Source: Malacoraja senta
Taxonomy: Eukaryota
Reading direction: 5' to 3'
Assembly: GCA_038087875.1 (NCBI GenBank)
Contig: JAXLNO010003783.1
Location: forward strand, 1-64,000
DNA: 64,000 nucleotides
The position numbers and the translations under genes were made by a program. Numbering within the stretch: the first letter of the stretch is position 1; each line of letters opens with the position of its first letter. Below are positions 11,560 to 51,290 of the stretch, in pieces. Below the pieces are notes generated by a model. That model worked only from the letters and a program-made list of their open reading frames with translations. It did not search any database and was not told where the DNA came from.

Positions 11560-12376
11560 TCTATATAATTAAAAGTCTCATCTTGACCACTTCCTGTTTG
11601 CACTGCATATTGATTTTAGAAAAAACGCTACCACTTACGGTTGTGATTTTTAGTCATCTTACTCAGAGTCCCCTTCCGCTGCACAGGGCAAGAGGATTTT
11701 TCCCATCGATGAAAAATAAAAGAGTTATTTGTGTTTAAAAAATGTTGAGATTCTCTCTCCTGTCAATCACTGCCATGAAGGCCACGCCCCTTCTGGTGTG
11801 AGGGGGAGGGACTATAAAACTCGGAACTGTGGGAATGGCTCAGTCTCTGCAAGATGGGGGAGGGAGAGGTCACCTTGGTTGCCTTGCACCCTGCTTGAAA
11901 TGGTAACCATATAACCATAACAGCACGGAAACAGGCCATCTTGGCCCTAGGAAACTGCTTTTCAATTTGGTGGCCTTGCACCCTGCTTGAAATGGTAGGA
12001 AACTGCATTTGAATTTGGTGGCCTTGCTCTCTGCTTGAAATAGTAGGAAACTTCATTTGAATTTGGTGGCCTGCACTCTGCTTGAAATGGAATTTAAAGG
12101 AATAGCCTCGAGTCAACTGCCAGTCCACCAGCCGTGAGTGAGTGAGCTGCCAGCACACCAGGCTTGAGTGACTGAGCTGCCAGCCCAATAATCCATTCGG
12201 CCCACAATGTCCATACTAGCCCTTTGGAAACCAGTCCCTTCAGCCCACAACACCCAGAAAGCCCCTCCCCCTCCCACCGGCCACCAATATTAGAATTGGT
12301 GGAGAGGTGGAATATTGCATTGGTGGACCAGCCCTCCCGTGTGAACATGGGACCCAACGGGACCCACTTAGTCTAG
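11560..12376 (+). mobile_element. Non-autonomous Helitron
   Basis: 5' TC, 3' CTAG, inserted between A and T, subterminal hairpin tgggaccc-aac-gggaccca, no TSD; contains about four 48-nt internal tandem units (11880-12090). Confidence 0.8.
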
Positions 12377-12454
12377 TATTATCAATAAATTACATTTCTG
12401 AAATACAATGATGTGTTCCAGAGTTAGAGCCACTGGCTGCTTGCATGCTTGTAC

Positions 12455-12667
12455 CTTAATAATCCCTGCTCTGACAGCTGCCGAGTGTGTCTCCATTGCC
12501 GGACGAGGATAAAGTGATGCATCTGAGAGGATCTTCTTCTCCAAGCCAGCGAGGAGGGCCTCGAGTTCCTTGTGATGCACCAGCTGTTCTGTCAGTGGTT
12601 CCCCTGTGCTGTCTTGTGATGAACTGAAGAGCAGCTTGTGGACAAGTGGGAGCAATGCCGTCTCCTT
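12455..12667 (-). CDS. SUN luminal coiled-coil exon KETALLPLVHKLLFSSSQ...ELEALLAGLEKKIL...AGIIK
   Basis: 213 nt, open, phase 0/0, acceptor gtgtgtttag, donor gtacaa; resembles SUN1 VKLLFSEDQQ and SUN2 LRELESKIL. Confidence 0.85.
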
Positions 12668-15286
12668 CTAAACACACAAGAGCTGGATAGTCAGTGTTCC
12701 TCCTTGTAGACATTGAAATCAATGCAAAGCAGTATCTTTGTCATCTTAAAAAATATATTATTTTACAATTGTTGATCCTTTGGCGAGGGAGACAAGGCAA
12801 GGGAATACATTATAGCTGAAAGGATACTGAACTGTGGTGGGGAACAGAAAGATCTTGGAGAGCTTGTTGTGTAGGAAGGAAATGCAGATGCTGGTTTACA
12901 CTGAAGATAGACACAAAATGCTGGAGTTACTCAGCGGACCAGGCAGCATCTAATGCTCCAGAGATCCTGTCCATCCCGCTGAGTTACTCCAGCATTTTGT
13001 GTCTATCTTGTTGTGGGATCTTTGAAGGTAGTGGGACAGTCATCTTGGAACTGTGGAAAATGTTAGCTCAGCCGTACCTGTAACATTGTGTGGATTCTGG
13101 TTGCCTCCCTACAGGATTGATGGAAGTTCACTAGAGAGGCACAAGAAAGGTTTACGACATTGGCAGGACTGGAGAAGAAAGGTTGCAAGGAGAGAGTCGT
13201 CAGGAATTGCAGCAGGTAGATTGTTTGAGTGGTTATAATATTATAGAAAAAAAGACAAAATGCTGGAGTAACTCAGCGGGACAGGCAGCATCTCTGGAGA
13301 GAAAGAATGGATCATGTTTAGGATTGAGACCCTTCTTCAGACGTCTCGACCCAAAATGTCATCCATCCCCCCCCTCCCCCAGAGATGCTGCCTGTCTCGC
13401 TGATGTCTATCTGCGGTGTAAACCAGCATCTGCAGTTCCTTCCTACACATAAGGTTATGATATTCTGACTAGTCCATTTAGAGTAAACAAGGTAACCATC
13501 TTTCCTGCACAAAGTTGGAAATGTCATTCAATTAGCACAAGGGTTTGATGCAATTAGTACAGTGGGCCAAGGGTTCACTGCCTGAATGGTTGTTGGAAGC
13601 AGAACTCACATTTACTGGGCACCTGGACCAGCAGTAGAAGAGGCTGTGAGTGAGATTCACCTGGCCTCCCAGCATATAAAACAGAAGGTGGGAACTAGAG
13701 GTCAATTGACAGGTACATGGATAGGACAGGTTTGGAGGGATATGGACCAAACGCAGGCAGGTGGGACTAGTGTAGCTGGGACATGTTGGTGGGTGTGGGC
13801 GAGTTGGGCCGAAGCGTCTGTTTCCACACTGTATCACTCTATGATTATAATTCATCCAGCACTCATAGTTCACAAGAGGAAATAACTAATCATTTGGTAA
13901 GCTGCATCTAATCAAACGTAGCCGACATGGTTTAATGAAAATCATGTGTGACAAAACTTGACAGGATGTGATAGGGAGTTGATAAGGGAAACCTGTAAAT
14001 GTAGGAGGAAGGAACTGCAAATGCTGGTTTAAACCAAAGATAGACACAATAAGCTGGAGTAACTTAGCGGCTCAGATAGCATCTCTGGAAAAAGGACTTT
14101 TCTATTTGTTTTCTCCAGAGATGCTGTCTGACCCGTTGAGTTACTCCAGCTTTTTGTGTTGATCTCCTGTAAATGTAATGTGTATTTAGATCTCCAAAAG
14201 GCATTTGCCACATATGAGGGCACATGTGCTAACATGGACTGAAAGGTGGCAGTCATATAGAAAAACAAGTTAGAATAAATGCGTGAAAGCTGCAGATGGA
14301 ATAAATCTGAAAAACAAAATGCTGGGAGACTCGGGTCAGGCTGCATCTGTAGCCAGAGAAACAGAATTCATGTTTCAAGTCAAAGACCCTTCGTCAGAAC
14401 TGGGGAGGTGACAAAAGAAACTTGTAAAGCTGCACAGGTGGGTGGATGGCTCTGATAGTGTCAAACCAGGTGACCATGGGGATAAGCTGCACACAAAGTT
14501 ATCTGGTCAAGGAGTGAATAGGAGCGGTAAGGTGATGAGACAAATAGACAAAGATCGTAGCAGTTGCAAAATGCAGAGCAAGAAGACATGTCTAGGAAGG
14601 AATGGCAGATGCTGTTTAAACCGAAGATAGACAATGGGACAGGCTGCATCTCTGGAGAGAAGGAATGGGTGACGTTTCTGGTGGAGACGCTTTTCAGACA
14701 AGACATGTCTGGCAGGTCAGCATGGACATGCCCTCCACATTTGGATAGAGATTTAAAAAAACAAACCAACGCAATTATCACAAATGGACAACTGATACTA
14801 ACAGAGGAATCAAGTTACCCAAGATTATCAAATTCCGTTCAAGCCCAGAGGACTGCGATGAGCCCAAATGGAAGGTGAGATGCCATTCCTCAAGATTGCT
14901 TTGAGCCTCATTGCAACAGTGCAGGAAGTCACAGACTGTTCAGTCACTCCCACATCCAAGAGTCAGAATGAGATAACAGGAAGCTCAGGAGTGCCCCTTG
15001 GATTGAACCCAGTGCCTGTTTGGTATCTCCAATGTTGAGGACACCACGTCGTGAACACAGGGAAAGGAGCAGAGGGGGGAAAGGAGAGACAGTGAGAGAA
15101 AGGGAAGAACACAGTAGAGAGGGAGGGAGAGAGTGAGAGTTGGGTGTTAAAGAAGGGGAGGAAAGAGGGCAAGATACTTTCCACACTTTCCTCTTCACCT
15201 CAATCTCTTTGATCATCTCCAAGGCAGAAGAAGTGCTAAATTTTGGCCTTTTACAGTTAAATAAAAAACTATTTGGGAAAACTTAC

Positions 15287-23031: not shown

Positions 23032-26000
23032 ATGTATAAAACGTCCACAATTATTATTCGGTATGTGCTTAAAGGTATTATCTGTGAGCGACTACTTTCA
23101 GTTGTGCCAAGTAATGATGGTACAGGACAGGGACTTTTTGATCTATTGATTGAAACATTACAGCATCTTAAAATTGACCCCCAAAAATGTTTATCTGTAT
23201 TATGTTTAACTATATTACAAAGTTAGAAACTAGTATTCCAAATCTATTAAATCTAATAACACAATTTGGTCAGTTCTCAGGATATAGGATTAATTGGAAT
23301 AAAAGTGAAATTATGCCAATAACAAAATTCAACTTAAATACAATACAACAATCCCCTTTTAAAATAGTTAAAGATAAACTTAAATATTTAGGAATCTATG
23401 TAACTAAGACATATACCTCTTTATTTAAACAAAATTTTCCATCCTTACTTAATAAATTACACAAACATATTCAGTACTGGAAAACACTTCCTATTTCAAT
23501 GCTTGGTAGAATTAATGCTATAAAAATGATTTTCTTACCGCAACTACTATATTTATTTCAATTAATTCCGATATATATTCCAAAAAACATTTTCAAAAAA
23601 GTCGACTCCATTGTTTCAAGCTTTATTTGGGATTATATGAATCATAGAATAAGTAAAAAACATTTATGGAAGTCAAAGAGCAACGGAGGTTTGGCCTTGC
23701 CAAATTTATTATTTTATTTTTGGGCAGTCCATATTAAAAACATGAATTTCTGGCTGGAAGAAATGGACCAACAACCAGAATGGTTAAGGATGGAAAAGGA
23801 AGACTGTTTACCTTTTGAAATAGGTTCGATTATATTTGCTACCACAAAATTGCATAAAAAAACCTATAAGGAAAACCCTATAATACATAGTGGAATACGA
23901 ATTTGGAAACAATTAAAAAAGGCTTTAAAACTGAATAATATACCACTATGCCTTCCCATTGTAAATAATCCTCTATTCAAGCCATCCATATTGGATAGAG
24001 GTTTTATACAATGGAAAAATCAGGGAATTAAAAGGATTGGACATCTTTATAGGGAAGGCATCTTTCTGTCATTTCAAGAGTTACAACAGAATCATGGACT
24101 ACACTCAAATAACTTTTTCAGATATTTACAAATTAGAGATTATGTTAAATCCAATACACAAGTTTATAGGACTAGGGAACCAGAAATTCTTGATGAATGT
24201 TTGAATACGCATCCTAACACTGAAAAATTAATAGCTTATATTTATAACATTCTCCTAAATAATGAGGAACCACCGATGGAACTATATATACATAAATGAG
24301 AAAATGAGTTAGGTTATCCTATTACGAAAGATATTTGGGACGAAAGTTTACAACATATACATCAATGTTCGTTAAATGCCAGACATGCTTTAATACAATT
24401 TAAAGTCTTACACAGATTACATTATTCCAAAATAAAACTAAATAGAATTTTCCCACATATTTCTCCTATATGTGATAAATGCCTGCACCTAGAGGCCAAT
24501 TTAACACATACCTTTGCAAATTGTATAAAAATTAAAAATTACTGGACTGATATTTTTCAAATAATCTCTGAAGTTGTTAATACCAAATTGGCTCCAGACT
24601 CAAAATTAATAATACTTGGGATATCAGAACAAAGTTTAACACTCACAACAAGCCAAAGAAACTTCCTTGACTACAGTATAATAACTGGGAAAAAATTAAT
24701 ATTAAAATTCTGGAAAGGCCCTACAACCCCCACAATTAAAATGTGGATTGTGGAAATGTCGGAGACCCTACATCTAGAAAGAATTAGACTTGTCTTAATG
24801 GACAAGCAAGAACTTTTTGTTAAAATATGGGCTCCATTCATTGCCTATTTGAAGGGATAGAGTGGCCCAGCGCGAAAGCCCGACTGAAGCTTGAACTCAG
24901 GATTAGATGTAATTATATTTCATAACCTACGAACTTATCTCCTATGACGTATTATAAGTTATTCATTCCACCTCTTTTTCTTTTTTGATATTGTAATTCT
25001 TCTTTCTCTCTTTTCTTTCTTCTTTCTCTCTATTTTTCTTTTTCTATCTATATAAAAAAAAAACACTAGAAGCAGAAATAACTGACAATTGACAAATTTA
25101 ATAATGTATGAGTGATTGATGTATATGAAAAGTTTTTTCTTCTATTATAATATGTTACTCTACATTGTAATATGTTTGCTTCTAATAAAAATTTATATCA
25201 CAAAAAAAAAATGTTTATCTGATAGCACAGATGGCGCTGCAAGCTACTATGGCCAGTATAATGGTTTACAAAGTAAAATTGCTGATGTGGCTGATCAACA
25301 TGTTCATATACAATACAATACAATACGGTTTTATTCGTCACATTGCACATAAAGTGCAAGTGAAATGGTGCTATGCCCATGTCTTGAATTTGGTGATAAC
25401 TGAAACAACAAATGTTGTGAGCCTGCAGTTTCTTTTTTCAATTTGCTCCAGAATAGAGCAACTTTTGTGAAAGCATCATACAAGAGAATGGCTGTATGGA
25501 TAGAAGTTGTTGGAAAACATCTAGGATAAGAAAAAAATGAAACGATTAAAGCTAATTGGTGAGACCAGATGGTCAGGAAAATCCAATGCAGCAACAACTA
25601 TATTTGGAAGTTTTGATGATGCCGCTGCCAGTACTTTCGTAAATCTATTGACATGATTATCAATGATACAAGATTCAGAAAAGTTTGATGCAAAAACAAA
25701 ACATGAAGCAAATGTTTTACTTCAAAGTCTTCTAAAGTTTGAAACCATATTGACAGCATTTCTTTACTTGTATATATTTGAAACTACAACTCCGTTATCA
25801 AGTTATCTACAGACAAGTGGGTTAGATATGTTTACTGCATGGAGTTTGGTAGATTCAGCTACAACAAAGTTGAAGGAACAGACAAGAACATTTAATAACG
25901 TTCACAGCAAGGCTTTGGAATTTGTAAATAAATGTAATGACAGGATTTCACAGATGAATATGGATGAAAATCAAACATTGGAAATTATTGCGTTGGAAAC

Positions 26001-26700
26001 AGCATTGCCAGTTAAGAGGCAGAGGAAGAAGAAAAGAATGGCAGATGAGCTTATTGATGATAAAAGAAATTCCTCAGATTCTCTAGCTGATTTTTGAGTA
26101 AATGTGTTTAACCCAATAATGGATCGCATTGTCCAGTCACTAGAATCACGCTTTGTACAACACAAACAGTTGTATAAAGATTTGTCCTGCTTGGACCCAG
26201 CAAAGTTTAAAACTATTGCAGAGAAGGGCCTTGAAGATGAAGCATTGGAAGGTATTATTAAGCTGTTTCCACAAATCAGCAAAGATCAAGTAATATTGGA
26301 ATTGTTTTCTTTTGCTTCAAACTTTGATGTATTAAAGTTGCTTAATGATGTTGAGAATATGGATTCCAGTTGCAACAATTGTAAAATGTGCAGCACTTGC
26401 CCATCGAGTGTACTAAACATTCTGGCATCCAACAGACTTCATGACAAGGCATATGATAACCTTTATCAACTTTATAAAGTCATCTGCACACTATCAGTTA
26501 CTCAAGTCCAATGTGAGAGGACATTTTCAAAGCTAAAGATCATAAAGACAAGGTTAAGAAATTCGCTGTCTGAGGAGAATTTGGAATCATACATGTTGCT
26601 AACCATTGAAAAGGAATTGTTAGATGAATTGGATGCAGAAGCAATTATTGGCAGATTCGCACAATCATCTAGCGAACACAAACGATTGCTCTTAATATAG
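23032..26700 (+). pseudogene. hAT transposase remnant
   Basis: KCLS|DSTDGAASYYGQYNG rejoined across the L1; WCYAHVLNLVI; C-terminal dimerisation motif CERTFSKLKIIKTRLRNSL. Several stops, frameshifts and a small LINE-tail insert near 25311-25364. Confidence 0.88.
23198..25206 (+). mobile_element. 5'-truncated L1-clade LINE nested in the hAT transposase
   Basis: 370-aa ORF2 fragment (FSGYRINWNKS, KYLGI, GGLALPN), poly(A) tail, 15-bp TSD AAAAATGTTTATCTG at 23183-23197 and 25207-25221. Confidence 0.94.
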
Positions 26701-35024: not shown

Positions 35025-35076
35025 ATGCTGCTTTTTACCTTACTGAACACTTACGGTGTGGCCACTGTCTCCTCTG
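35025..35076 (+). CDS. MHC class I leader exon MLLFTLLNTYGVATVSS
   Basis: ATG followed by a hydrophobic 17-aa peptide ending in small residues, then a phase-1 donor G|gtaagc that fits the alpha1 exon. Confidence 0.75.
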
Positions 35077-38000
35077 GTAAGCAATACTGCTTCAACCTGT
35101 GAACTTTGAGGAAACAACAAAACTGATTATATTTACTGTTGCACAGTGCCTGTGTTTGCCCTGGGTTCATTGTCTTGGATGTATTAATTGAATGATTGAA
35201 TTGAATGTATTAATAATTTTGGGTAACGGTCTTTCCTTAGTTGTAAAGGCTCCTGTGGGAAGTTATATATACTATGGTTACCTTGGCAATCCATTGAACA
35301 GAAGAACTGAATACATGTAAATAATGAACATAGAACATAGTACAATACAGCACAGGAGCAGGTCCTTCAGTCCTTCAGTCTGAAGAAGGGTCTCGACCCG
35401 AAACGTCACCCGTTCCTTTTCTCCAGAGATGCTGCCTGACCCGCTGTTAGCTCAGCATTTTGTCTACCTTCGGCCCACAATGTCTGTGCCGAACAAACTA
35501 AACTAATCTCCTCTACCTGTATGTGATCTGTATCCGGCCATTCCCTGCCTATCTATGTACCTATCTAAAAGCCTCTGAAATGTAACTGTTATATCTGCCA
35601 CCATCACCACAACCACCACTGGCAGCGCGTTACAGATGTCCACCACCCTCCACATAAAACAACTTGCTCCGCTCATCTCCTTTGAACATTGCTTCTCCAA
35701 CCTTAAAGTGATGTTCTCTGGTCTTCAACATTTCCACCCTGGGAAAAAGGTTCTGGCTGTCCACTCTGTCTGTGCCTCTCACCATGTTGTGCACTTTCAT
35801 CAGGTCTCCCTTCAACCTCCAGTATACAAGAGAAAACAATCCATGTTTGTCCAATCTGTCCTTGCACTAATGCCTCAGACAGAATTCAGGTGATGTGCAC
35901 TTTCAATAAAGAAGTGACTTCTGCATTAGTAGGTGTTCCACCTCTCCAAGATTTCCTCAGCTGGTGTTAGACACCCACATGATGGTAAAATTCAGCCTGC
36001 ATTAAATGACCAATCAATGTTGTGTTAATGTTGTTGCCATCTTGTTGTTTGTTGCATGCTTCCTGTCCTGCAGACCCTATCCATTACCCCATCACCACTT
36101 CCCCAGAAGACGATAATGAGATTTAAGAAGCTTGAGGATAGGCACGTAGATATGCAGGGAATTGAGGGATATGAATCATCTACAAGCATGAAGAGTTTAG
36201 TTGAACTTGACATCATGTTCGGCACAGACATTGTGGCCGAACTCCAGCCCATTACACCCTTAATGAACAAAAATCTATCAATCTCAATCTGGAAATTTTC
36301 AAGTGGGCAACATATTCAACAGATTACAGAATCGAGAACCAGAGGACATAGGTTTAAATTGAGGGGGGAAAGATTGAATGGGAATCTGATGAGCAATTTC
36401 TTCCCACACAATGGTACCTTTCTAACTATTCTGACATTCATCAAGGCTTGGAGATTACAAACCTACTCGTCCTGAAAGTTTCATCCCATTGTTATCAAAT
36501 GAAAGTAAATATAATGGTGTTAAAGAAGGAACTGCAGATGCTGGAAAATCGAAGGTACACAAAAATGCTGGAGAAACTCAGCGGGTGCAGCAGCATCTAT
36601 GGAGCGAAGGAAATAGGCAACGTTTCGGGCCGAAACCATATAATGGTGATGGCCATGTTGAAATAATAACATATAAAACAAAAATCCTCGGCTGTGGAGT
36701 GTTTTGGGAAGCCACATGGATTTTATCGTTACTGTATTCCACTCTTAGCCATCTTATGTTTCTCCTGGTAACACTGAAACAGACACTTCTAACTCTGCCC
36801 TCGGGGCCCCTTCTCACTTCACTTAAACACATGAACTTTGACACTGTCTGGTGTGCTGCATGTAATCTTTATCACAGAACAAATACTGCTTATGCATGTG
36901 GAAACAAGAAACTGCACATGCTGGTTAATACACATAAAATACTGGAGTAATTCAGCAGGTCAGGCAGTATGTCTGGAGAACATGGTTAGGTGATGTTTCA
37001 GTTGACACAAGTGTAGGAAGGAAGTGCAGATGTGTAAGAAGGAACTGCAGAAGCTGATTTAAACCGAAGATAGACAATAAAGCTGGAGTAACTCAGCGGC
37101 ACAGGCAGCATCCCTAGAGAGAAGGTATGGGTGACGTTTCGGGTCGAGACCCTTCTTCTGACTGCTGATGCAGATGCTGGTTTACACCGAAGATAGATAC
37201 AAAAGGCTGGAGTAACTCAGCAAGTCACGCAGCATCGCTGGAGAAAAGGAATAGGTGGAGTTTCAGGTCAAGACACTGCATCAGACAGAGTCGGGGGTGC
37301 ATATATTTCCTTGTACTTTGTCATATCTCTCGGTTCTCTGTCCCCTGACTCTCATTCTGAAGAAGGGTCTCGACACGAAACGTCACCTTTTCCTTTTCTC
37401 CGGAGATGCTGCCTGACCCACTGAGTTACTCCAGTATTTTGTGTCGAGTTTCAATTTAGGCCCTGTTTATCTCAGTCTCCACCACCCCCCCCCCCCCCAT
37501 CTCTATGAGCTGTGTTGCAGCTGCCTATGAGGACCTGGACTCAATCCTGATCTCTTACAACCTGGCTTTTTTTTCCCCCTGCAAACGTGTGTTTGCTATG
37601 GTTATTCCAGTTTCCCCGCACGTCCCCAAAATGCCGGGCTGAAAGGTAAATTGGCCAGTGTGAATTGGTCATGCATATGTATTAGAATTGGTGGAGGGGA
37701 TGAGGGAGGTGTTAATGGGAGATTGGCAAATATTAAAAGGGTTAGCGTACCACAGGTATAAATAGGTGTTTGATGGTCACCACGAACTTGGTGGGCTAAA
37801 GGGCCTTTTATGTGCTGTACCCAGTGGACATAAGTTTAAGATGAGGGGGGAATGATTTAATAGGAACCTGAGGCATAGCATTGTTACACAAAGGGTGGTG
37901 GGTGTACTGAATGAACTGCCGGAGAAGGTAGTTCAGGTGCGTACTATCACGACATTTAAGAATCATTTAATCAGGTACATGGATAGGATAGGCTTATAAG

Positions 38001-38514
38001 GATATGGGCCTCAGTCAGCTGTAGAGCCCACATCAATGGATATTTCTCAGGTGGAGATTAACAGATTCTTGATCAGTATGGGTTTCAAGGGTTATGGGGT
38101 GCAGGCAGGAGAATGTGGTTGATAGGGAGAGATAGCTCAGCCATGATTGAATGGCCGATGGGCTGAATGGCCTAATTATTCTCCTAGAACTTATGTACTG
38201 ATGAAATACAGGCAGTGTAGATGAGGCATGTTGGTTGGTGTGGCAAGTTGAGCCATAGGCCCTGATTCCCTGCTGTATGACTCTTTGACTTTACCTCTCT
38301 ATGATTCTATAAAGTCTCCTTGACATTGTCCAGTTTCTTAATATAATAAAATATTCTTCAAATTTTGGAATATTGTAACTAGTAGAACCTATCGACATGA
38401 TAGACAATAATAGATCTTCGAAGATGGGAAACAATCCAGTAGGATCATTCAATACCTCGACCATAATTGGTGGAGTAGGTATCAGAGCCCATCATGCCAA
38501 CTCTTGAAGAAGGC

Positions 38515-38815
38515 TCAGTGGTGCAGCGGTAGACTTACTCGATTACAGCACCATAGACCCAGGTTGGATCCTGATTACGGATGCTGTCTGTACGGAGTTT
38601 GTCCATTCTCCCCATTACCGTGTGGGTTTTTCCCGAGATGTTCGGATTCTTCCCACATTCCAAAGACGTATAGGTTTGTAGGTTAATTGGCTTGGTCTAG
38701 AATGTAAATTGTCCCTAGTGTGTGTAGGATAGTGTTATTGTGTGGGGGTTGCTGGTCAGTGTGGACTCGCACGAAGGGCCTGTTTCCGTGCTGTATCTCT
38801 AAGCTAAAAACTAAA
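38515..38815 (+). mobile_element. HE1-type SINE
   Basis: tRNA-like head and ctaaactaaa tail, in class I intron 1. Confidence 0.8.
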
Positions 38816-39010
38816 CTAAAGGCTCCTGACCCAAATTGTCACCTGATCATTGATGCTGCCTGCCCCACTGAGTTCATCCAGCACTTGCATCTGCAGGTCC
38901 TTGTGACTCCCTTATTCAAAGTTATTGTATTGTTATCAGTTTTAGCATTAATAACTTAGTTATTTTCAGTGAATGATACAATCATACTTATTTTTGTTTA
39001 TGCATTGCAG

Positions 39011-39271
39011 ATTTACACCATCTTGCATTTTACTACCTGTTGAACCATGGATTGAATGAGCTGCCTGAGTACAGTATGGTAGCAATGCTGGATGACGTCC
39101 AGATAGCATATTTTGACAGCACACTAGAGCGGGCTGTTCCCAGACAGCGATGGATGGCCCAGTCTTTCCCGCAGGATCACTGGGATTCAATGGCCATCAC
39201 AGTTGCAGGTTTTCATGGGATTGTCAGAGGAAATGCTGAGATAGTCTACCAACAGCAACATGGTATCTCGA
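39011..39271 (+). CDS. MHC class I alpha1 exon (DLHHLAFYYLL...LDDVQIAYFDS...VPRQRWM...HWDS...)
   Basis: 261 nt, acceptor tgcattgcag, donor A|gtaagt; DDxQ..FDS, PRxxW and WD motifs of class I alpha1. Confidence 0.95.
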
Positions 39272-41015
39272 GTAAGTGTCGTGAGCGGACCTGGGGTAGA
39301 CACCCAGTGATGACACAGATGGATTTTGTTTTACTTTTATTGTTGACACATGATTCTCTGATACACTTTTTTTGCGTTAGTCAATCACATCAAAGAAAAC
39401 TATTCATAAATACAATCAAACCAAACTCGTACAATAGGTAGAGCAAAGAGTGCAGAATGTAGTTCTCAGCATTGTAATGTACCAGTGCCAGAGACAAAGT
39501 CCAGTGTCTACAATGGGGTTGAGGTGAACCCTAGCATAAGGGAGGACTGTTCAGAAACCTGATAACATAGGGGAGGAAACAGTTACTGAGTCTGGTGGTG
39601 CACGCTTTAATGCTTACGTACCTTCTGCAGGAAGAAGGAGTGACCAGAACGGGACAAATCTTTGATTATGTTGTCTGCTTTCCTGAACCAGTTGAAATAC
39701 AGATGGATTCACTGGTGGGGAATCATGTTTGTGTGATCGATTGTGCTACATCTCCACCTCTCTGCAATTTCCAGCGGTCTTGGGCAGAACTCTTTCCAAA
39801 CTAAGTTGTGATGCAACCTGTCAGTATGCTTTCTATGGCACATTTGTAGAAGTTTGTAAGAGTCATTGGAGATGCCGCATTTCCTTAGTCTCCTGAGGCA
39901 GTAGGGGAACCAGAAACTCTCAACCTTTTTCACTTCAGCACCATTGATGCTGTTTCAGACATTTACTCCATAACATTTTGATAGAGACACGGCCCATCGT
40001 CTATATTTAATGTGTCCTAACTGCTGAACACACAGTCATAACAGTTGGCTGGTGATAGTCTCTTTATGGGTTAAGCATTTGATATTCAACACCAGTAATA
40101 AGTGGATGGATTGGATCATCTGTTTTGTTGGGCTGGAATGAGGGAGAAACCATTAGTTTATTTATAGCCTGATCATCTAGAGATGGGATCTTGATTTAAG
40201 CTGGTTGATGGTGACTATGAGGTATTCCCTCAGTAATAATATTGTGTTAATCCAGCATCCCCTCAATATTGGCAACAATCCTCAGAGGGTGTAGCAATCC
40301 CACACAGTGCAACAGCCTTGATGTACTTCCCATCTGCATTGCCTTAACCTTCAGACTGACCTGTTGGCTCTGTAGCATTGCCCATCTGACAATGCACTTC
40401 TTCCTCTGTTCTTTATGTACGACAGTGCAGAATCTGAGTTCCACCCTTCTGACACAGCAGAACTCCTTTAGTGTTACATCCGCAACAGTAAAGCTCCCCC
40501 CCATAACACTTGAGGTTAGTCCATGCCCTCAGTATATAGACCATGGGTCATTGAGTCACACATCATGGAAACCGGCCCTTCTGCTCACTGAATCCACATT
40601 GATCATCCATTGTGCTAAGATGGAGTCACAGCAAACTGCAGATGCTGCCAATCTGAATTTAAAACAAACAGGAGGAACTCAACGAGTCAGGCAGCATGCT
40701 GTGGAAAAATGGACAGAAAACATATGAGACCAGGACCATTTAGAGTGATGGGGTAGAGTGGAGAAAGCTGGAAAAGAAAAGTAGTCTGTGTAGGATAGTG
40801 TTAATATGCGGGGACCACTGGTCGGTGCGGACTCGGTGGGCCGAAGGGCCTGTTTCCGCGCTGTATCTCTGAGCTAAACCTGCTCCTGTGCTGTACAGCT
40901 CCATGTTGTGTTCTGTTATGCCTGTTTGTACCATGCTGAGAACTGATTTGTAAATTGCCTCTCCCTTCCATCCACTCTCCCCAACACAAATCCTCCACCC
41001 CTACCTCAGCCCCAG

Positions 41016-41291
41016 CTGTTTGCTTTGTGCAGGGTTTCTGCGGCTGTGAAGTGGACAGTGACAATTCCACTGATGGGTTTGTCAGACTGGGTTATGATGG
41101 GGAGGATGCCTGTGCTTTTGACAAGGACAGAATGCGCTGGATTGCACTACGTCCAGATTTCCAGATGCTAGCAGATCGGTGGAACGTCAACACCTTCATG
41201 AACAAGTATTTCAAAGATCTCCTGGAGAAGGACTGTGTGAAATGGCTGCTGATATATCTGGAGTGTGGACAAGAAGCACTACAGAGGAGAG
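41016..41291 (+). CDS. MHC class I alpha2 exon (VCFVQGFCGCEV...GYDGED...RW...DCVKWLLIYLECGQEALQRR)
   Basis: 276 nt, phase 1/1; GC, YDGxD, W147, C164, W167 and Y171 equivalents present. Confidence 0.95.
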
Positions 41292-41394
41292 GTACACGAC
41301 GTAGGCACTCTGACTGATGGGCCAGAGGATATCCTCTGGATAGATCAGGTGGGAAATATCATGCACTTCAGGCTGTCACTTGAGTAATTATTTA

Positions 41395-41680
41395 GTTTAG
41401 TTTAGAGATACAGCGCGGAAACCCACCGAGACCGCACCGAGCAGCCATGCCCGCACACTAACACTATCCTACACACACTAGGGACAATTTGCATTTATAC
41501 CAATCCAATTAACCTACAAATTTGTACGTCTTTCGAGTGTGAGGGGAAACCGAAGATCTCGGATAAAACCCACGCAGGTCACAGGGAGAACGTACAAACT
41601 CTGTAAAGACAAGCACCCGTAGTTAGTAACAAACCCAGGTCTCTGGCGCTGTAAGGCAGTAGCTCGACCGCTTCGCCACC
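41395..41680 (-). mobile_element. HE1-type SINE
   Basis: Same family, in class I intron 3. Confidence 0.85.
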
Positions 41681-42495
41681 CTGTTCTACAACGTGGGTAT
41701 CAGTAAATTGTCTGGCAACGTGCCTCTTAGATGGAACCAGTGGGTAGGAAGTGCAAGTGAAAGATAAATATTGTATCAGTGTCCTTTATCCACAGTCATA
41801 TAGATATTCAGGAAATGGAGGAATATGTATCTTGGTCTTATGTTTAGCACCGACCTTGTGGCCTGAAGGGTCTGTTGCTGAACTGATCAGAAACCCAATC
41901 AGATTCTCTATTTGCCTCTATTACTCCTTGGGATGGTGACATTCAATTTCCAACAGTTCTCTATTTGAAGAACTTCTTCCTCCCATTCCCTCTTGGAATA
42001 TTTAGTGTTATTATTCAGCAGAGATTCATGAACAGGTAGAAGCAATCATGTCTACAGTATCAATCCCAATGGTGAGTTATACTCCTCCATTGGGCCTGCA
42101 TTCCCCTTTCATCTGTGCTGTCAGTTAAAGTCTGGAGCTAAGATAAGGAGCATGTCAGTGATATTAAAGCTAAATGTTTTGTTGTTTTGCCAGAAATGCA
42201 AAATGAAAAGAGAAAAGGCTGTAAACTTTGTGCAAGATAGAACTGCAGATGATGGTTTACACTGAAGATAGAAGATGTTGGAGTAACTCAGTGGGTCAGA
42301 TAGCATCTCTGGGCATTCCTTCTCTCCAGAATGCTGCCTGACCTGCTGAGTTATTCCAGCATTTTGGGTCTAGGCTGAAAACTTAGTTCAGCCAGAGAAA
42401 AAACTCTGATTGGGAAAGTGGTGAGTTGCAGTGATCTTACAATTGAAGGCTTTTGTTCATGTCTTCACTGATTCTGACTCTTCTTACACTTGCAG

Positions 42496-42768
42496 AAACC
42501 CCTGAGGTGTTTATTGGGATTAAACGTGATGGGTCGCAATCACTGAGACTCTCCTGCCTTGTCACAGGCTTCTAGCCACGGGCCATCGATGTAACGTGGC
42601 TGAGAGGTGGTGAGGGGGTCCATGAGTCTGAATCCAGTGATCTGTTGCCCAATTGGGATGGGACTTACCAGCTGAAGAATACAATTCAACTGAATAGAGA
42701 AGATGTGGCAAAATTCTCCTGTTACATCGAACATGCAACTCTGCTGCAGGGAGTCAATGTTCCACAGG
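42496..42768 (+). CDS. MHC class I alpha3 (Ig C1) exon with in-frame stop
   Basis: 273 nt: TPEVF...LSCLVTGF*PRAIDVTW...LLPNWDGTYQL...FSCYIEHATL; donor G|gtaagt. Confidence 0.95.
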
Positions 42769-42859
42769 GTAAGTGGCAAGTCAATGAGGCTGATCACTTG
42801 AGACCATAAACCTCCTGGACTGAGATAACAGTCTCAACTCACACTCTTAACTAAGCTGT

Positions 42860-43500
42860 GGATTTAGACTTTAGGCTTTAGAGATATGCTGCAGATACAG
42901 GCCCCTCAGCTCACTGAGTCCTCGCTGAATAGTGATCAACCCATACATTTACACTAACCTACACAGTACGGACAATTTACAATTTTACCTAAGCCAAGTA
43001 ACCTACAAACCTGTATGTCTTTGTAGTGTGGGAGGAAACCCACGCAGTCACAGGGAGAACATACAATGTCCTTGCAGACAGCACCTGTAGTCAGGATCAA
43101 ACCCAGGTCTCTGGTGCAGTAAGGCAGCAGCTCTACCGCTACGCCACTGTGCCACCCATTATTAATTTGTGGTTATCTAATTGCTCATAATTATTGATTG
43201 TCAATGGAATGTGGTTTTAGTTTAAGAGATACAGCGCAGAAACCGGCCCTTCAGCCCACCGAGTCTGCGTCAACCAGCGATCCCTGCACACTTACATTAT
43301 CTTACTTATTAGGGGACAATTTACAATTATACCAAGCCAATTAACCTACAAACCTGTATGTCTTTGGACTGAGTGAGGAAACCGGAGATCCAGGCAAAAC
43401 CCACGCAAGTCCCGGGGAGAAGGTACAAAACTCTGTACAGACGGGACCCGTAGTCAGAATTGAACCGGGTCTCTGGCGCTGTAAGGCAGCAGTTCCACCG
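42860..43500 (-). mobile_element. Two adjacent HE1-type SINEs
   Basis: Copies at about 42860-43155 and 43215-43500. Confidence 0.8.
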
Positions 43501-43962
43501 AGTGGGCAAAGCAGAGCCAAATGGAATACAGTGTAGCAAGTGTCTGGTTTTACATTTTGGCAGTCGGAATAAAGACATAGACTATTTTCTAAATGGGGAG
43601 AGAATTGAGAAACCTGAGCTACAAAGTGGGAGTACTAGTGCAGGATTCCCAAATAGTTCATTTGCAGATTGAGTCAGTGGTAAGTAAGGCAAATGCAATG
43701 CCAGCATTCATTTCGGGGGGCGTAGAATATAAAAACAATGATATAATGCTGAGGATTTATCGGGCACTGGTGAAGACACATTTGGAATATTGTGAGCAGT
43801 TTTGGGCTCCATATTAGAAAGGATGTGCTGGCTTTGGAGAGGGTCGAGAGGATGTATGTCCTGGGGATGATTGATTTAACGTATGAGGAGTGTTTGAAGT
43901 CTCTGTGCCTGTGCTCATGGGATTTAGAAGGATGAGGTGGGAATCTCATTGAAACCTACCAG

Positions 43963-46900
43963 CAGGGCCGGATTTAGATGAAGAGAGGCCCTAAGCTGTT
44001 CCACTTGTGAGGCCCCCCCCCAATCCCCCACCCCCACGACCAGAGGAAGATGGTCCACCGATTGACACCGATTTGCAGCCGAGCGTGGCCAATGAGATAA
44101 GGGGCTGGAAAGCTGGGCTTTATTTATTTATTTATTGCCACTGCTAGTGTCGAGTTATTGGCTTAAAACACTATTATTCTGAAATGGAGGGCAAGGAAAA
44201 TTACTGAAGTGTTGTTTAGAGACTACAGTGCGTTGTGACAGCATATGTAAGAAAGGCCTATGACAGTGTCAAAAATATTATACACCTTGCAGGGCTCTCA
44301 CTTAATTTTTTTTCTCTGTTGTCAGCCGGGCAACCTTGGTAGCTTTTTAAGTTGCCAAATGACAGTTTAGGTGGTTATTTAAGATGGCTTGCATGACACG
44401 TGCGATAATGTGCTCGGACGACCAGTCAGAATTATGCTCAATGAAGCATTCACATATTATTTCTGCTTCAAATAAAGCCACAAATTAAACATATTCACCA
44501 ATCAGGACATGATATATACCACAATGACATGCAGCACAATTATAATACTGTATCTTAACTCTTTTTACACGTTGCAATGAATGCAATTTCTATTATTTCT
44601 TTCCACTTCCAAAAAAAAATGTGGTTGGCTTATTCAGCGTATGATCAACCTCGGTGAGACCAAGTGCAGGCTTGGCGATCGCTTCGCACAACACCTCCAC
44701 TCAGTTCGCAATAACCAACCTGATCTCCCGGTGGCTCAGCACTTCAACTCCCCCTCCCATTCCGAATCTGACCTTTCTGTCCTGGGCCTCCTCCATGGCC
44801 AGAGTGAGGCCCACCGCATATTGGAGGGGCAGCACCTCATATTTGCTTGGGTAGTTTACACCCCAGCGCTATGCACATAGGCTTCTCTAATTTCAGGTAG
44901 TCCTTGCTTTCTCCCTCCTTCCCCTCCCATTCCCAGCTCTCCCACAGCCTACTGTCTCCGTCTCTTCCTTTATTTTTCATGTCATTCCCCCCCCCCCCCG
45001 ACATCAATCTGAAGAAGGGTCTCGACCCGAAACATCGTCTATTCCTTCGCTCCACAGGTGCTGCCTCACCCGCTGATTTTCTACAGCTTTTTTGTCTACC
45101 AATGGGATCCCACAACTGGCCACATCTTCCCATCTCCTCCCCTGTTGGCTTTCCATAGAGACCGCTCCCTCCGTAACTCCCTGGTCAATTCGTCCCTTCC
45201 CACCCAAACCACCCCCTCTCCTGGCACTTTCCATTGCAACTGCAGGAAATGCTACACTTGGCGTTTTAATTAAGTTCAAGACAATGGGGCTGTACATTGG
45301 CCATAAGGTTGCTGCCTAAAAGTGCCAGAGACCTGGAATTGATCCTGAATATGGGTGTTGTCTGTTTGGAGTTTGCTCCTTTTCACTTTGATCGCATGGG
45401 TTTTCTTCGGGTGCTCTTGTTTCCTTCCACATTCCAAAGGTGTGCAGGAACCTATTTCAGAACCAACCCTAAACGTAATATTTCCCTTTTGTCCAGAGAT
45501 TCTGTCTGACCTGTTGAGTTACTCCAGCTTTGTGTGTCTATCTTCAGTTTAAACCAGCATCTGCAGTTCCTTCCTACACACACGATACTATATGATAGAA
45601 CTTTATTAATCCCAGGAGGGAAATTGTGTGTGTGTGCGTGTGGGTATATATACTATGCACACACACACACACACATATATATATACAATACAATTACAAT
45701 ACAATTTTATTTGTCTTTTGGACAAATTTGTCATTTGGACCCCGTTGAGGTCCAAACGAAATGTCGTTTCTGCAGCCATACATTACAAAACGAAGAAGAC
45801 CCGAGACACAACACAATTTACACATACATCCATCACAGCGCTGTGATGGAAGGCAAAAAAACGTATCTCTCCACTGCACTCCCCCCCCCCCACCCCCCCG
45901 ATGTCAGAGTCAAAGTGAAAGCCCCCGGCGGGCGATGGTGATTATCCCACGGCCATTAAAGCCACGCCGGTTAATGCAGGGTCGCGCACCGCGTCTTGGT
46001 GTTAGAGCCCCGGCGCGCGCTCGCAAAGTCCGGCGGCCATTCCAAGCCGCGCGGGGCGGTGATGTAAAGCCCCCCTCCAGGTGCTCTTCAACCCCGCAAC
46101 TCGGGCGGGAGAAGTCGCCGCTGCGGATGCCCCGAAAAGCGGTGTCCCACCAGGGGACCCACGGGCTTCCGGTGTTGCCGTCCGCCAGACCCGCGGTTGT
46201 AGCCTCCGAATCTCCGGGGGTCGGGTAGCAGCTGCGATTGTCTCCACCACAGCTATAAATATACACCGTTTTGTTTTCTCGTTTATAACATTGTTTACAG
46301 AGTACTATGTTTACATATTCTGTTGTGCTGCTGCAAGTAAGGATTTCATTGTTCTAACTGGGACGTGAGAGAATAAACTCTTGACTCTTGACTTACTTCG
46401 CTAATGTGTGGGAAAGAACTAGTGTACGGGTGATAAATAGTCGGCGTGGACTCGGAGGGCTGAAGGGCCTGTTTCCACGCTGTATCTTCAAATTAAGCTA
46501 AAGACACTAAAACCAGAGGGAGTCTAAAGAAGTGTTTCTACCCGAAACGTCACCCAATTTCTTCTATCCTGAGTTGCTGGCTGCTCCATGGAGTTCCCCC
46601 GCACAATTAAAGCATGGAATAGTCTTCACCCTACCATAGTTACCCAACCAGACGCAACTAAATTTAAGGTACCTCTTTTTTCCCCAAGAACCCTTTTTTG
46701 CTTAAGTCCAAGTCAAGAATCAAGAGAGTTTTATTGTCATGTGTCCCAGATAGGACAATGAAATTCTTGCTTGCTGCAGCACAACATAATATGTGAACAT
46801 AATACAGAACAGGAGATAAAAGTTCAGTGTGTTTATATACCATAGACCATATATATACACAATAAATAAACAGATAAAATGCAATAGGCTGTTATTGTTC

Positions 46901-47478
46901 AGCCCTCTACCACCTCCAGTTTAAATTCCTTTTAGAATATTTATGGAGGATCAGGAAACCAGAAGCGAGAGTTACTCCAGGGAGATACTCCTGATCCAGG
47001 GTCAGGGAGTGATTCTGTGTTAGTTTTCAGCGGTTGCGGCGAGGCAGCAATGGCGGACAAATCTCCCACAATTCAAAGCGAGGGAGAAAGTGCCCAGCGC
47101 CGACCAGTTGCCGTGGCAGTGCGCATGCGCAGGGCGGCCGATGACGTGCGGGCTGTGGTTGTGCGCATGTGCAGGGGAGGACGTGCTGGCCGTAGCAGTG
47201 TGCATGTGCAAGGCGGCCGGCCGTGCCGGCGGATGAGGAGCGAGCGGAGAACGGAGACCCGGACACGGAGAGTGACAGACGGAGATAGAGATAGAGAGGG
47301 GGGCCGCCCCGCCCAGAGTTGAACGGCTGGTGTCCTGCCTTGGCCGGAGGCCCCCTATATTTCAGGGCCCCAGGCTTCAGCCTATGAAGCCTAGTGGTAA
47401 ATCCGGCTCTGCGAGCCCCTCCTAGATCTCCAGGCCCTAAACTGAAGCTTGTCCATCTTATATGTAAATCCGGCCCTG
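43963..47478. mobile_element. Non-autonomous hAT element with nested cargo, inserted in a CR1
   Basis: 14-bp TIR CAGGGCCGGATTTA; perfect 8-bp TSD CCTACCAG at 43955-43962 and 47479-47486. CR1 sequence continues on both sides (about 43500-43962 and 47479-47850). Confidence 0.9.
44645..45260 (+). mobile_element. Penelope-like element fragments in partial tandem
   Basis: GETKCRLGDRFAQHLHSVRNNQPDLPVAQHFNSPSH (GIY-YIG region), the terminal repeat, then the linker AFHRDRSLRNSLV...CNCRKC. Confidence 0.88.
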
Positions 47479-48841
47479 CCTACCAGATAATGAAATGCCT
47501 GGTTAGTTGATGGGAAAGGAAGTTTTCAGTAATGGGAGAGTCTAGCACAGCCTCACAATAAAAATACCTACCTTCAATATGGAGATGAGGAGGAATCTCT
47601 TTAGTCACAGGGTGGTGAATCTGTGGAATTCATTGATACAAACAGCTGTGTGGGTCAAGTCATTGCATATTTTTCAAGCAGAGATTGATAGGTTCTTGAT
47701 GAGTACGGGTGACAAAGGTTACAGGGAGAAGGCTAGAGAATGGGATTTAGCGGTAAAAAATCGATCTGCTATGACTGAATGGTGGAGTAGACTCAATGGA
47801 CTTGAAAGGCATAATTCCGCTCCAATATCTTATGGTCAAAATTATTCTTATGTCACCCTTAACTCACCCATCCAAATGTAGGAACAGTGGAAGCAAGATA
47901 GGCTGATCCTGGACAAGGTCTCTTATCTTCTTCCTTGGGCATCTAGCTAATTTTCTGATAGTAGTTAGTTACACAAAAGACCAACAGTGGTGCCATATTA
48001 TCAGGCTGAAGTAGCAGCACCTGTTCTGTAGCTGACTTATTTGTTCCAGACAAGACCTCTGCAAAGATCTTCACACCAGGGCCAAGCTGACATGGTTAAG
48101 ATTGCTGGTCAGTACAAATAGACAGTAGTGTTAATGTCTGTGTGTGCCTATGTGTGTGTGTGTGGGCTCATGTGTGTGAGACAGTGAGGGGGAGAGAGAG
48201 AGAAAGAGAGAGCATGTGTATGTGAGAAAATTAAACTCAGATATCATTGAAATATCAGCAAAGATTAAAACCTTTGAAGTTTTATCAACTATAAATGGGT
48301 TCACTTTTATTTGCTATAATAACAATCATCAACATAAGAAAATGGCCTTGTTGACCTCTACACTGTAAATAGTCATATATTTCTGACGTACTTGATTCTT
48401 TAAATTCTTAATTAAATGCTGCAGATAAAATCTCAATACCTCAATGCTAATATGAACTTAATGATTTTTCATTGATCATTTTAAGCACATCCATCCTCTG
48501 TATAAATACTTAAATCTAAAACGTTATTACTTTTTAATTAGATATGAACAGTGCTACTTTAATTTAGATAATAAAATCATTACAATGTTGTTATTGATCA
48601 CTAAATGTTTAAAATGCACTATACAGTGGCTTGCAAAAGTTTTCATACCCCTTGAACTTTTCCACATTTTGTCACGTTACAACCACAAACGTAAATGTAT
48701 TTTATTGGGATTTTATGTGATAGACCAACACAAAGTGGTGCATAATTGTGAAGTGGAAGGAAAATGATACATGGTTTTCAAATTTTGTTACAAATAAAAA
48801 ACTGAAAAGTGTCGCGTGCAAAAGTATTCAGCCCCCCTGAG

Positions 48842-49863
48842 TCAATACTTTGTAGAACCACCTTTCGCTGCAATTACAGCTGCAAGTCTTTTGGGGTATA
48901 TCTCTACCAGCTTTGCACATCTAGAGACTGAAATTTTTGCCCATTCTTCTTTGCAAAATAGCTCAAGCTCAGTCAGATTGGATGGAGAGCATCTGTGAAC
49001 AGCAATTTTCAAGTCTTGCCAGAGATTCTCAATTGGATTTAGGTCTGGACTTTGACTGGGCCATTCTAACACATGAATACGCTTTGATCTAAACCATTCC
49101 ATTGTAGCTCTGGCTGTATGTTTAGGGTCGTTGTCCTGCTGGAAGGTGAACTTCCGCCCCGGTCTCAAGTCTTTTGCAGACTCTAACAGGTTTTCTTCCA
49201 AGATTGCCCTGTATTTGGCTCCATCCATCTTCCCCCATCAACTCTGACCAGCTTCCCTGTCCCTGCTGAAGAAAAGCATCCCCACAGCATAATGCTGCCA
49301 CCACCATGTTTCACAGTGGGGATGGTGTGTTCAGGGTGATGTGCAGTGTTAGGTTTCCGCCACACATAGCGTTTTGCATTTAGGCCAAAAACTTCAATTT
49401 TGGTCTCATCTGACCAGAGCACCTTCCTCCACATGTTTGCTGTGTCCCCCACATGGCTTGTGGCAAACTGCAAACGGGACTTCTTATGGGCTTTTATCAA
49501 CAATGGCTTTCTTCTTGCCACTCTTCCATAAAGGCCCGATTTGTGGAGTGCACGACTAATAGTTTTCCTGTGGACAGATTCTCCCACCTGAGCTGTGGAT
49601 CTCTGCAGCTCCTGCAGAGTTACCATGGGCCTCTTGGCTGCTTCTCTGATCAATGCTCTCCTTGCCCGGCCTGTCAGTTTAGGTGGACGGCCATGTCTTG
49701 GTAGGTTTGCAGTTGTGCCATACTCTTTCCATGTTCGGATGATGGATTGAACAGTGCTCCGTGAGATGTTCAAAGCTTGGGATATTTATTTATAACCTAA
49801 CCCTGTTTTAAACTTCTCCACAACTTTATCCCTGACCTGTCTGGTGTGTTCCTTTGGCTTCAT
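48842..49863 (-). pseudogene. Tc1 DD34E transposase with one nonsense codon and one frameshift
   Basis: MKPKEHTRQVRDKVV...GYK*ISQ (TAA at 49786-49788), [28 protein letters not shown] (34 residues between D and E). A 2-nt G insertion near 49230 gives a span of 1022 nt against 1020 expected. Confidence 0.95.
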
Positions 49864-49944
49864 GATGTTGTTTGTTCACTAATGTTCTCTAACAAACCTC
49901 TGAGGCCTTCACAGAACAGCTGTATTTATACTGAGATTAGATTA

Positions 49945-50297
49945 ATAATAATAATAATAATAATGGATGGGATTTATATAGCGCCTTTCTAATACTCGGC
50001 GCTTTACATCGCATTATTCATTCACTCCTCAGTCACACTCGGTGGTGGTGAGCTACTTCTGTAGCCACAGCTGCCCTGGGGCAGACTGACGGAAGCGTGG
50101 CTGCTAATCTGCGCCTACGGCCCCTCCGACCACCACCAATCACTCACACACATTCACACACATTCACACGCAGGCAAAGGTGGGTGAAGTGTCTTGCCCA
50201 AGGACACAACGACAGTATGCACTCCAAGCGGGATTCGAACCGGCTACCTTCCGGTTGCCAGCCGAACACTTAGCCCATTGCGCCATCTGTCGTCCCG
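49945..50297 (-). mobile_element. tRNA-derived CORE-like SINE with an L2-type tail, nested in the Tc1
   Basis: A/B boxes, GTCCTTGGGCAAGACACTT core, AAAGCGC...GCGCTATATAAA stem and (ATT)n tail; AGATTA duplication at 49939-49944 and 50298-50303. Confidence 0.88.
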
Positions 50298-50614
50298 AGA
50301 TTACACACAAGTGGACTCTATTTACTAATAAGGTGACTTCTGAAGGCAATTGGTTGCACTGGATTTTATTTAGGGGTATCAGAGTAAAGGGGGCTGAATA
50401 TTTTCGCACGCGACACTTTTCAGTTTTTTATTTGTAAAAAAATTTGAAAACCATGTATAATTTTCCTTCCACTTCACAATTATGTGCCACTTTATGTTGG
50501 TCTATCACATAAAATCCCAATAAAATACATTTACGCTTGTGGTTGTAACGTGACAAAATGTGGAAAAGTTCAAGGGGTATGAATAATTTTGCAAGCCACT
50601 GTATATGCCAACAG

Positions 50615-50835
50615 AGAGGGCAGTGAAAGAAGATATGAAGATTAGGATCGTGACTGGAGCTGTAATTGTTCCTCTTATTCTCCTGGGGATCATCCTTGGA
50701 ATTGGTTGCTGGAAGAAGAGGAAAAAGAGAAAACCTTTCAATGAACAGGTACCAGCTGACAACAGCAGAGACCAGGAGAGGACCATGAAGCACAATCAGC
50801 TTCCTTTGGGATGCAGAGGAGGTCTACCGGAATGA
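50615..50835 (+). CDS. MHC class I connecting peptide/TM/cytoplasmic exon
   Basis: Phase-1 start after ccaacag: ERAVKEDMKIR, a hydrophobic IVTGAVIVPLILLGIILGIGCW segment, then basic KKRKKRK. The 3' end is uncertain (possible donor at 50749; last codons are CR1-derived). Confidence 0.85.
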
Positions 50836-51290
50836 CGCCTGGATTAGTGGGGTATTAGCCACAGGGAGAAGTTGGACAGACTGGACAGTTGGATTGTTTT
50901 CTCTGGAATGTCGGGGATTGAGGGGAGACCTGACAGTAATATATCAAACTGGGAGGAGTAGAGATAGGGTAGACCATCAGACTTTTTACCCAGGAAGGAA
51001 ATATCAAATAAGAGCAGGTATTGCTTTGCAATGAGTGGCAAAGTTAAAAAAAGATGTGCAGGACAAGTGTTTTACGCCAAGGGTGGTGAGTGACTGGAAT
51101 GTGCTGCTGGAGGTGGTGGTGGAAGCAGATATGATAGTGGCATTTAAGAGACTTTTAGATAGGCACATGTATATGCAGGGAATGGATGGATATGGATTAT
51201 GTGCAAGCAGATAACAATTGGTCTTGGCATCATGTTCGGCACAAACATTGTGGGTCAAAGGGCCTGTTCTTGTGCTGTACTGTTCTATGC
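50808..51290 (+). mobile_element. Decayed CR1 3' fragment abutting the class I TM exon
   Basis: tgcagaggaggtctaccggaatgacgcctggattag matches the CR1 VQRRFTRMLPGL coding segment; a CR1 tail follows. Confidence 0.75.

Follow-up and report, generated by a model that had tools for sequence, protein, structure and literature searches.

All nonclassical class I genes of the elasmobranch major histocompatibility complex (MHC-Ib genes) have been placed in the MHC by Verissimo et al. 2023 (PMC10751288), who mention single-copy UDA, multicopy UEA and an unpublished CD1-like UFA. A 2025 review (PMC12562908) recognises UDA, UFA and UGA as single-copy Ib lineages, describes UFA and UGA as CD1-like and single- or low-copy in sharks and rays, and, citing a personal communication, says that lipids in both are indicated by crystal structures and mass spectrometry. 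Two entries of the Protein Data Bank (PDB) bear these names: 9CH4, "Crystal structure of shark nonclassical MHC CLASS I, UGA" (released 2026-03-18), and 8GM8, whose title ends in "UFA" (released 2024-11-27). No primary paper on 9CH4, 8GM8 or UFA/UGA was found in our literature search. Here we consider a relative of these genes in a stretch of 64,000 nucleotides (nt) from the skate Malacoraja senta (contig JAXLNO010003783.1, positions 1 to 64,000 of the forward strand), called the window below. Our preferred reading, to which we give a probability of about three in four, is that the window holds a recently disabled or null copy of an MHC-Ib gene from the sister lineage of UGA, and that this gene, where intact, probably encodes a presenter of hydrophobic ligands.

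In the sequence-only reading, positions 39011-41291 were taken for the alpha1 and alpha2 domains of a nonclassical class I protein. Both exons are confirmed as real parts of a skate MHC class I-like heavy-chain gene, and the coordinates were exact at the start of alpha1 (acceptor cag/AT, 39010/39011) and at the end of alpha2 (G/GTACAC after 41291). The whole gene consists of five exons across 35025-50836 on the + strand, with splice sites and start codon all intact. Its features are the following.

35025..35076, + strand: exon 1, leader peptide MLLFTLLNTYGVATVSS and the first base of the next codon; donor G/GTAAGC
39011..39271, + strand: exon 2, alpha1 domain; 261 nt, phase 1-1, followed by a GTAAGT donor
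41010..41291 or 41016..41291, + strand: exon 3, alpha2 domain; 282 or 276 nt
42496..42768, + strand: exon 4, alpha3 immunoglobulin C1-set domain; 273 nt, phase 1-1, with an in-frame stop inside
42573-42575, + strand: in-frame TAG in alpha3 where the conserved TGFYP motif has its Tyr, caused by C>G at 42575
50615..50836, + strand: exon 5, connecting peptide, transmembrane helix (IVTGAVIVPLILLGIILGIGCW), basic stop-transfer sequence and cytoplasmic tail, ending in TGA

The leader, the alpha1-alpha2 platform, the C1-set alpha3, the transmembrane segment and the phase-1 exons are those of the MHC class I superfamily, and the gene is predicted to encode a type I membrane MHC class I-like heavy chain. 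The Pfam family MHC_I is matched by alpha2 with 59 bits and by alpha1 with 25 bits, under the curated cut-off of 28.3 bits; the C1-set family scores 34 bits on the portion of alpha3 downstream of the stop. Exon 1 joins 'AT' at 39011 to form an Asp codon, and its leader is similar to that of Heptranchias (MLLVTLLNVYCVPNVSS/DFHILAFYY). A leader at 34966, picked by a hydrophobicity scan, was rejected; the conserved ATG exon at 35025 with its donor was found instead. The alpha2 exon has tandem in-frame acceptors at 41009 and 41015 (cag/ccccag/), the upstream one being used in the RefSeq models of batoids (TPA...). A stronger-looking acceptor cag at 41033 was rejected, as its frame hits a stop immediately. 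Exon 5 was located by tblastn with the orthologous proteins of Leucoraja erinacea (P0001) and Pristis (P0151). It contains a candidate internal donor at 50748/50749, and the cytoplasmic tail has no Tyr. No second class I gene was found in the window by tblastn with the gene's own exons and with UGA, UFA, UAA and shark multicopy proteins.

From leader to tail the window is collinear with L. erinacea contig JAMYXN010000384.1 (L001), introns being 87-92% and alpha-domain exons 94-97% identical. At the nucleotide level the identity is 97.3% for alpha1 and 97.1% for alpha2, 94% for exon 1 (L001:100-151) and 88% for exon 5, the latter with an in-frame 9-nt gap. We considered whether the two loci are paralogues of one genome and rejected this: two public read sets of the same organism (X1 and X2) contain no L001-type alpha1 at a threshold of 95%, the exon being 97% identical. 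The window gene and its L001 counterpart are thus orthologues in two skate species.

With alpha1 as the query, an exhaustive HMMER search returned one near-identical protein, P0001 of L. erinacea. Searching with P0001, together with cluster look-ups, gave further batoid orthologues in Pristis, Mobula (two species), Hypanus and Hemitrygon, and others in Pristiophorus, Heptranchias, Scyliorhinus (two species), Mustelus, Cetorhinus, Carcharodon, Stegostoma, Hemiscyllium and Chiloscyllium (two species). At least 18 elasmobranch species have annotated members of the lineage, mostly a single gene each, and all names are the automatic "MR1-like" of NCBI. The window ectodomain is 87% identical to P0001 by blastp, or 92% over the 268 aligned columns of the tree, which exclude a 12-residue insert of P0001. 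Next in identity come the remaining batoids (72-78%), then sharks (58-70%) and UGA-type proteins (37-42%), and every other class I protein stays at 33-38% or below. A careful IQ-TREE analysis of 43 rows, with which a quick tree of 137 rows agrees, supports the pair of window and P0001 at 100/100, the batoid clade at 100/96, the lineage at 100/100 and its union with UGA at 95/96. The batoid host that had been suspected from the letters is thus borne out. Phylogenetic analysis, together with the invariant groove residues common to the clade, identifies the window gene as the skate orthologue of a conserved shark-and-ray MHC-Ib lineage now labelled "MR1-like".

The sister group is UGA, since its member P0007 matches 9ch4 at 1e-138 and this entry is titled UGA; the Stegostoma orthologue of the window gene matches it at 3e-62. 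The window lineage stands outside the UGA clade, each of the two being supported at 100/100. In L. erinacea, P0001 is followed about 42 kb downstream by a UGA-type gene (P0241) that shares its contig and its orientation, a linkage that fits an old tandem duplication. The tree and this gene order mark the "MR1-like" lineage as both sister and tandem neighbour of UGA. The PDB searches point the same way for alpha1 (9ch4_A, 2.4e-22, followed by UFA, 8GM8, at 2.6e-12) and alpha3 (9ch4_A, 9e-15); for alpha2 the best matches are MR1 (2e-16) and 9ch4 (7e-13). Both lineages contain the alpha1-helix motif AGFHG and residues T66, F70, G97, A123, W147, M152, Y155, F156, L159, L160, D163 and Y171. On the other hand, they are only 37-42% identical, and the window lineage has F7, H59, C99, L143, R146 and W167 where UGA has Y7, Y59, F99, F143, K146 and L167. 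It also differs from UGA in the absence of the N86 sequon, in the presence of a sequon in the alpha2 loop, and in its tail without tyrosine.

UFA is likewise a nonclassical, MHC-linked elasmobranch class I lineage without peptide anchors, and it too has G97. However, it forms its own clade (100/100; P0021 and P0077), in which P0021 has 8gm8 as its top structure match with 51% identity, and the UFA-type protein of Cetorhinus is only about 30% identical to P0001. Forcing UFA and the window lineage into one clade costs 4.2 log-likelihood units and is not rejected by the approximately unbiased test (p-AU 0.30). Genes of Callorhinchus may be a holocephalan counterpart of the pair formed by the window lineage and UGA, with weak support (71/49). 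The 137-row tree also contains a shark-only multicopy class I clade of 54 rows (e.g. P0165, P0179), presumably a named expanded Ib family (UEA or UBA), in which both alpha2 disulfide cysteines are lost, with V at position 101 and L, F or Y at 164.

The copy in the window is broken, at a site outside the range given in the sequence-only reading. The alpha3 exon reads ...LSCLVTGF*PRAIDVTW..., and L. erinacea has TAC at the site of the stop, for the Tyr of the almost universal GFYP motif. The TAG is present in the assembly and in the contigs of both X1 and X2. These contigs differ from the assembly at fixed sites that include 39741, 39972, 41776, 41250 (T>G) and, as the sole difference in the alpha3 exon, 42607 (G>A); they therefore represent another haplotype sharing the stop. 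The change at 41250 replaces Leu by Arg within WLLIYLE. At 42607 the assembly encodes Gly (WLRGGE) in place of an Asp that is otherwise conserved (WLRDGE), and X1 and X2 have Asp. Each haplotype thus has one derived nonsynonymous state, and the TAG is common to both. As a separate observation, one of the two contigs over alpha3 from a related skate (organism D, run X5) has a 2-base deletion at the position of window 42739, which would shift the frame of one copy or allele.

The TAG precedes the last exon junction by 193 nt. Premature stops more than 50-55 nt upstream of the last junction are subject to nonsense-mediated decay, and decay of this messenger RNA is thus predicted. Any protein still translated would have neither most of alpha3 nor the membrane anchor. 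No other damage is seen in the gene. The ratio of nonsynonymous to synonymous substitution rates (dN/dS) against L. erinacea is 0.52 in alpha1, 0.25 in alpha2 and 0.87 in alpha3, and at sites invariant in other batoids the window gene has two private changes against four in P0001. Since the remainder is intact and private substitutions are not in excess, inactivation would be recent, or the copy would be a null allele; we read the window copy as one or the other.

The same intactness could mean that the gene is still used in the species. In that case the TAG would be a null allele that segregates next to an intact allele or copy, or skipping of alpha3 would give an in-frame alpha1-alpha2-transmembrane protein, laid out much like EPCR or ULBP. 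The alpha3 exon has 273 nt and phase 1-1, so skipping preserves the frame; splice sites, start codon, leader, transmembrane segment and every invariant groove residue are in place, and the low dN/dS of alpha2 and the small number of private changes fit continued use. However, all class I genes have symmetric phase-1 exons, which are hence no evidence of skipping. Moreover, the TAG occurs on at least two haplotypes, each with its further derived change (the assembly Gly in WLRDGE, the Arg of X1 and X2 in WLLIYLE), and at 95% identity or above X1 and X2 contain neither an L001-like contig nor one with TAC. Nor is there RNA support: the exons had no reads in the RNA-seq of a related skate, of which 6% of the run was read, the tissue being unknown. 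We consider continued use unlikely, and return to the recently disabled or null gene and to what its intact orthologues would do.

The numbering of the groove was checked in two ways. In a phmmer alignment to nurse-shark UAA (6LUP), F falls at Y7 and H at Y59. In a MAFFT alignment of 137 rows, the anchors of the classical sequences, UAA and teleost, read Y7, Y59, R84, T143, K146, W147, Y159 and Y171. Only W147 and Y171 of these eight anchors are kept in the window gene, as had been proposed by eye; F7, H59, Q84, L143, R146 and L159 take the place of the others, and Y123 is replaced by A123. The remaining residues named in the sequence-only reading also occupy their positions: M24, M63, V67, F70, I73, V74, I80, V81, V114, L116, M152, F156, L159 and L160 in the groove, G97, C99 and A123 on its floor, and Q32, R48, Q96 and D122 among the contacts to beta-2-microglobulin (beta2m), together with LPNWDGTYQ in alpha3. 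The N86 sequon is indeed lost; the sole sequon is N104-S-T in the alpha2 loop, conserved throughout the lineage. The C101-C164 disulfide is retained, and an unpaired Cys at floor position 99 is invariant. The nonclassical nature of the gene is upheld, and so are the loss of its anchors and its unusually apolar groove. On our own list of 44 groove-lining positions, 28 are apolar in the window gene and 29-30 in the lineage consensus, against 22 in UGA, 23 in UFA and 21 in classical shark and teleost rows. Across 17 species, 24 of the 44 groove positions are invariant, compared with 50/135 in the rest of alpha1-alpha2 (Fisher p = 0.05), and the window gene retains all 24.

The class I platform, the C101-C164 disulfide, the beta2m-contact residues and a standard C1-set alpha3 are kept in the lineage, so that intact orthologues would most likely pair with beta2m at the membrane. 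The clamps for peptide termini appear to have been replaced (Y7F, Y59H, Y/R84Q, T143L, K146R, Y159L, Y123A), and apolar side chains over the small floor residues G97, C99 and A123 probably line the groove. Intact orthologues would thus most likely display a conserved hydrophobic, probably lipid-like ligand, and no peptides. The higher conservation of groove positions suggests a single class of ligand. As the tail has no tyrosine sorting motif, endosomal loading would not be required, and the secretory pathway or the cell surface would be the likelier place for it. A non-peptide hydrophobic ligand, which the sequence-only reading had put forward, remains the preferred inference, as the closest relative with a crystal structure is UGA (9CH4), reviewed as CD1-like and lipid-binding (PMC12562908).

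It is also conceivable that the lineage presents nothing. The groove would then be closed or narrow, its apolar residues packing against each other, and the protein would have some other job, as in FcRn, HFE or ZAG, or as a chaperone or receptor ligand. Presentation has been lost in many nonclassical class I-like proteins, and the two glycines of the alpha1-helix motif AGFHG, with the bulky F70, Y155 and F156, could allow the helices to close. Against this, the groove positions tend to be the more conserved ones, as counted above. UGA likewise has G97 and A123, UFA has G97, and both of these lineages are reported to hold lipids (PMC12562908). A structural comparison tells in the same direction. 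The AlphaFold2 model of P0001, the 92%-identical orthologue, has a class I fold with a predicted local distance difference test score (pLDDT) of 88; it is best aligned to UGA (Z 28.0), and then to lipid-loaded chicken YF1*7.1 (Z 27.3-27.4), about level with peptide-binding chicken BF2. A groove without a ligand therefore seems improbable to us.

Some points weigh against the preferred reading of a disabled gene from a lineage of hydrophobic-ligand presenters. The TAG is confirmed solely in the assembly and in two read sets that may come from one animal. The expected lipid would follow from residue chemistry and from a sister lineage that is only 37-42% identical. Finally, the exons are absent from the sampled reads of the related skate's RNA-seq mentioned above.

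The MR1 label of the clade deserves comment. The alpha2 domain of the window gene has the same length as that of MR1 and aligns with it without gaps, and MR1 gives the best E-values for this domain among PDB matches; overall identity is about 30%. However, the Schiff-base lysine K43 of MR1 (4lcw) aligns to the Ala of LERAVPRQRW in the window, and on our position mapping sharks have Ile, Cys or Thr there. With K43 absent, MR1-type chemistry is excluded and functional relatedness to MR1 was rejected. The template modelling scores of the P0001 model to MR1 (0.74-0.76) are below those to chicken BF2 (0.87-0.88). The resemblance is one of general class I similarity, and the label "MR1-like" is misleading.

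The automatic labels could also be taken as a sign that the lineage is undescribed, as the sequence-only reading had supposed. Indeed, database entries and cluster look-ups yielded no curated U-name for the clade, and the gene is neither UFA nor UGA. However, the gene nests at 100/100 in a clade already annotated in at least 18 species and has the 24 invariant groove residues in common with it, which largely removes the claim of novelty. A Pristis gene of the lineage, "MR1-like" LOC127585976, is listed as MHC-Ib in the supplement of Verissimo et al. 2023 (PMC10751288); it corresponds to P0151 by species and product name only. Of the three named single-copy Ib lineages (PMC12562908), UDA remains after UFA and UGA are excluded. 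It is the obvious candidate name for the clade, by elimination only, and no database record bears it. UDA sequences reportedly appear in Almeida et al. 2020; a member of UDA would be expected to cluster with them and to be a single-copy, MHC-linked gene. We therefore find an undescribed lineage very unlikely. The alternative of a true CD1 orthologue, or a CD1-like branch as first suspected, fares no better, as the single CD1 protein included shares 25% identity with the L. erinacea orthologue and sits on a very long, distant branch, the CD1-type Pfam model MHC_I_3 scores 22.7 bits on alpha2 (cut-off 35), and the tail has no CD1-type tyrosine motif. What the lineage would have in common with CD1 and YF1*7.1 is the expected working principle: a class I platform, an apolar groove and the loss of the anchors for peptide termini. 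Identity to these proteins is 25-29%, with no evidence of orthology.

A bolder reading, on which we would place little weight, makes the lineage a third hydrophobic-ligand presenter of sharks and rays. Its groove would have stayed nearly frozen from the split of sharks and rays onward, and Cys99 might hold the ligand covalently, much as MR1 uses Lys43; the stop might be a segregating null allele or be bypassed by alpha3 skipping. If this were true, the stop allele of the skate would be a natural knockout, or an alpha3-less variant, for study.

Several observations concern the surroundings of the gene. The RefSeq model P0001 is marked partial and has no leader exon; the leader is conserved at L001:100-151, 9.8 kb upstream of alpha1. 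The 12-residue insert of this model, GTRPRHSDWWNG, is a read-through of the alpha2 donor into the intron (L001:12984-13030). A second, truncated copy of the lineage occurs in L. erinacea contig JAMYXN010000412.1 (L002), at 11723-14216. It has alpha2 and alpha3 only (94% and 92% identical to the window), is predicted by NCBI as P0164 with an N-terminus from intron sequence, and is probably a pseudogene fragment.

In L. erinacea intron 4 measures 2.7 kb, against 7.8 kb in the window, where it contains a remnant of a Tc1/mariner transposase (Pfam HTH_Tnp_Tc3_2, 8e-25) at 48842-49773 on the - strand. Short interspersed repeats lie within introns at 38510-38815 (+), 40776-40909, 41391-41690 (-), 42250-42383, 42880-43140 and 43215-43500, one kind having a tRNA-like head. 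Their summed word depth is 1e5-6e6 in every skate run, against about 150-300 on unique flanks (run X1). Upstream of the gene there are a remnant of a hAT dimerisation domain at 26104-26700 (+) and an open reading frame of 370 residues at 23187-24299 (+), which has no Pfam match at E <= 0.001 and is probably a transposable-element remnant.

If UFA, UGA and the sister lineage described here had already diversified in the ancestor of sharks and rays, presentation of non-peptide ligands would be about as old as the classical MHC. The present gene adds little to the case for such antiquity, as its lineage was already annotated and its nearest relatives have been crystallised. Its contribution is a corrected five-exon model, including the leader exon absent from the RefSeq model of L. 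erinacea; evidence that the window lineage and UGA are tandem sisters; a clear statement that the name "MR1-like" misleads for this clade; and an example of recent loss, or of a null allele, in one skate.

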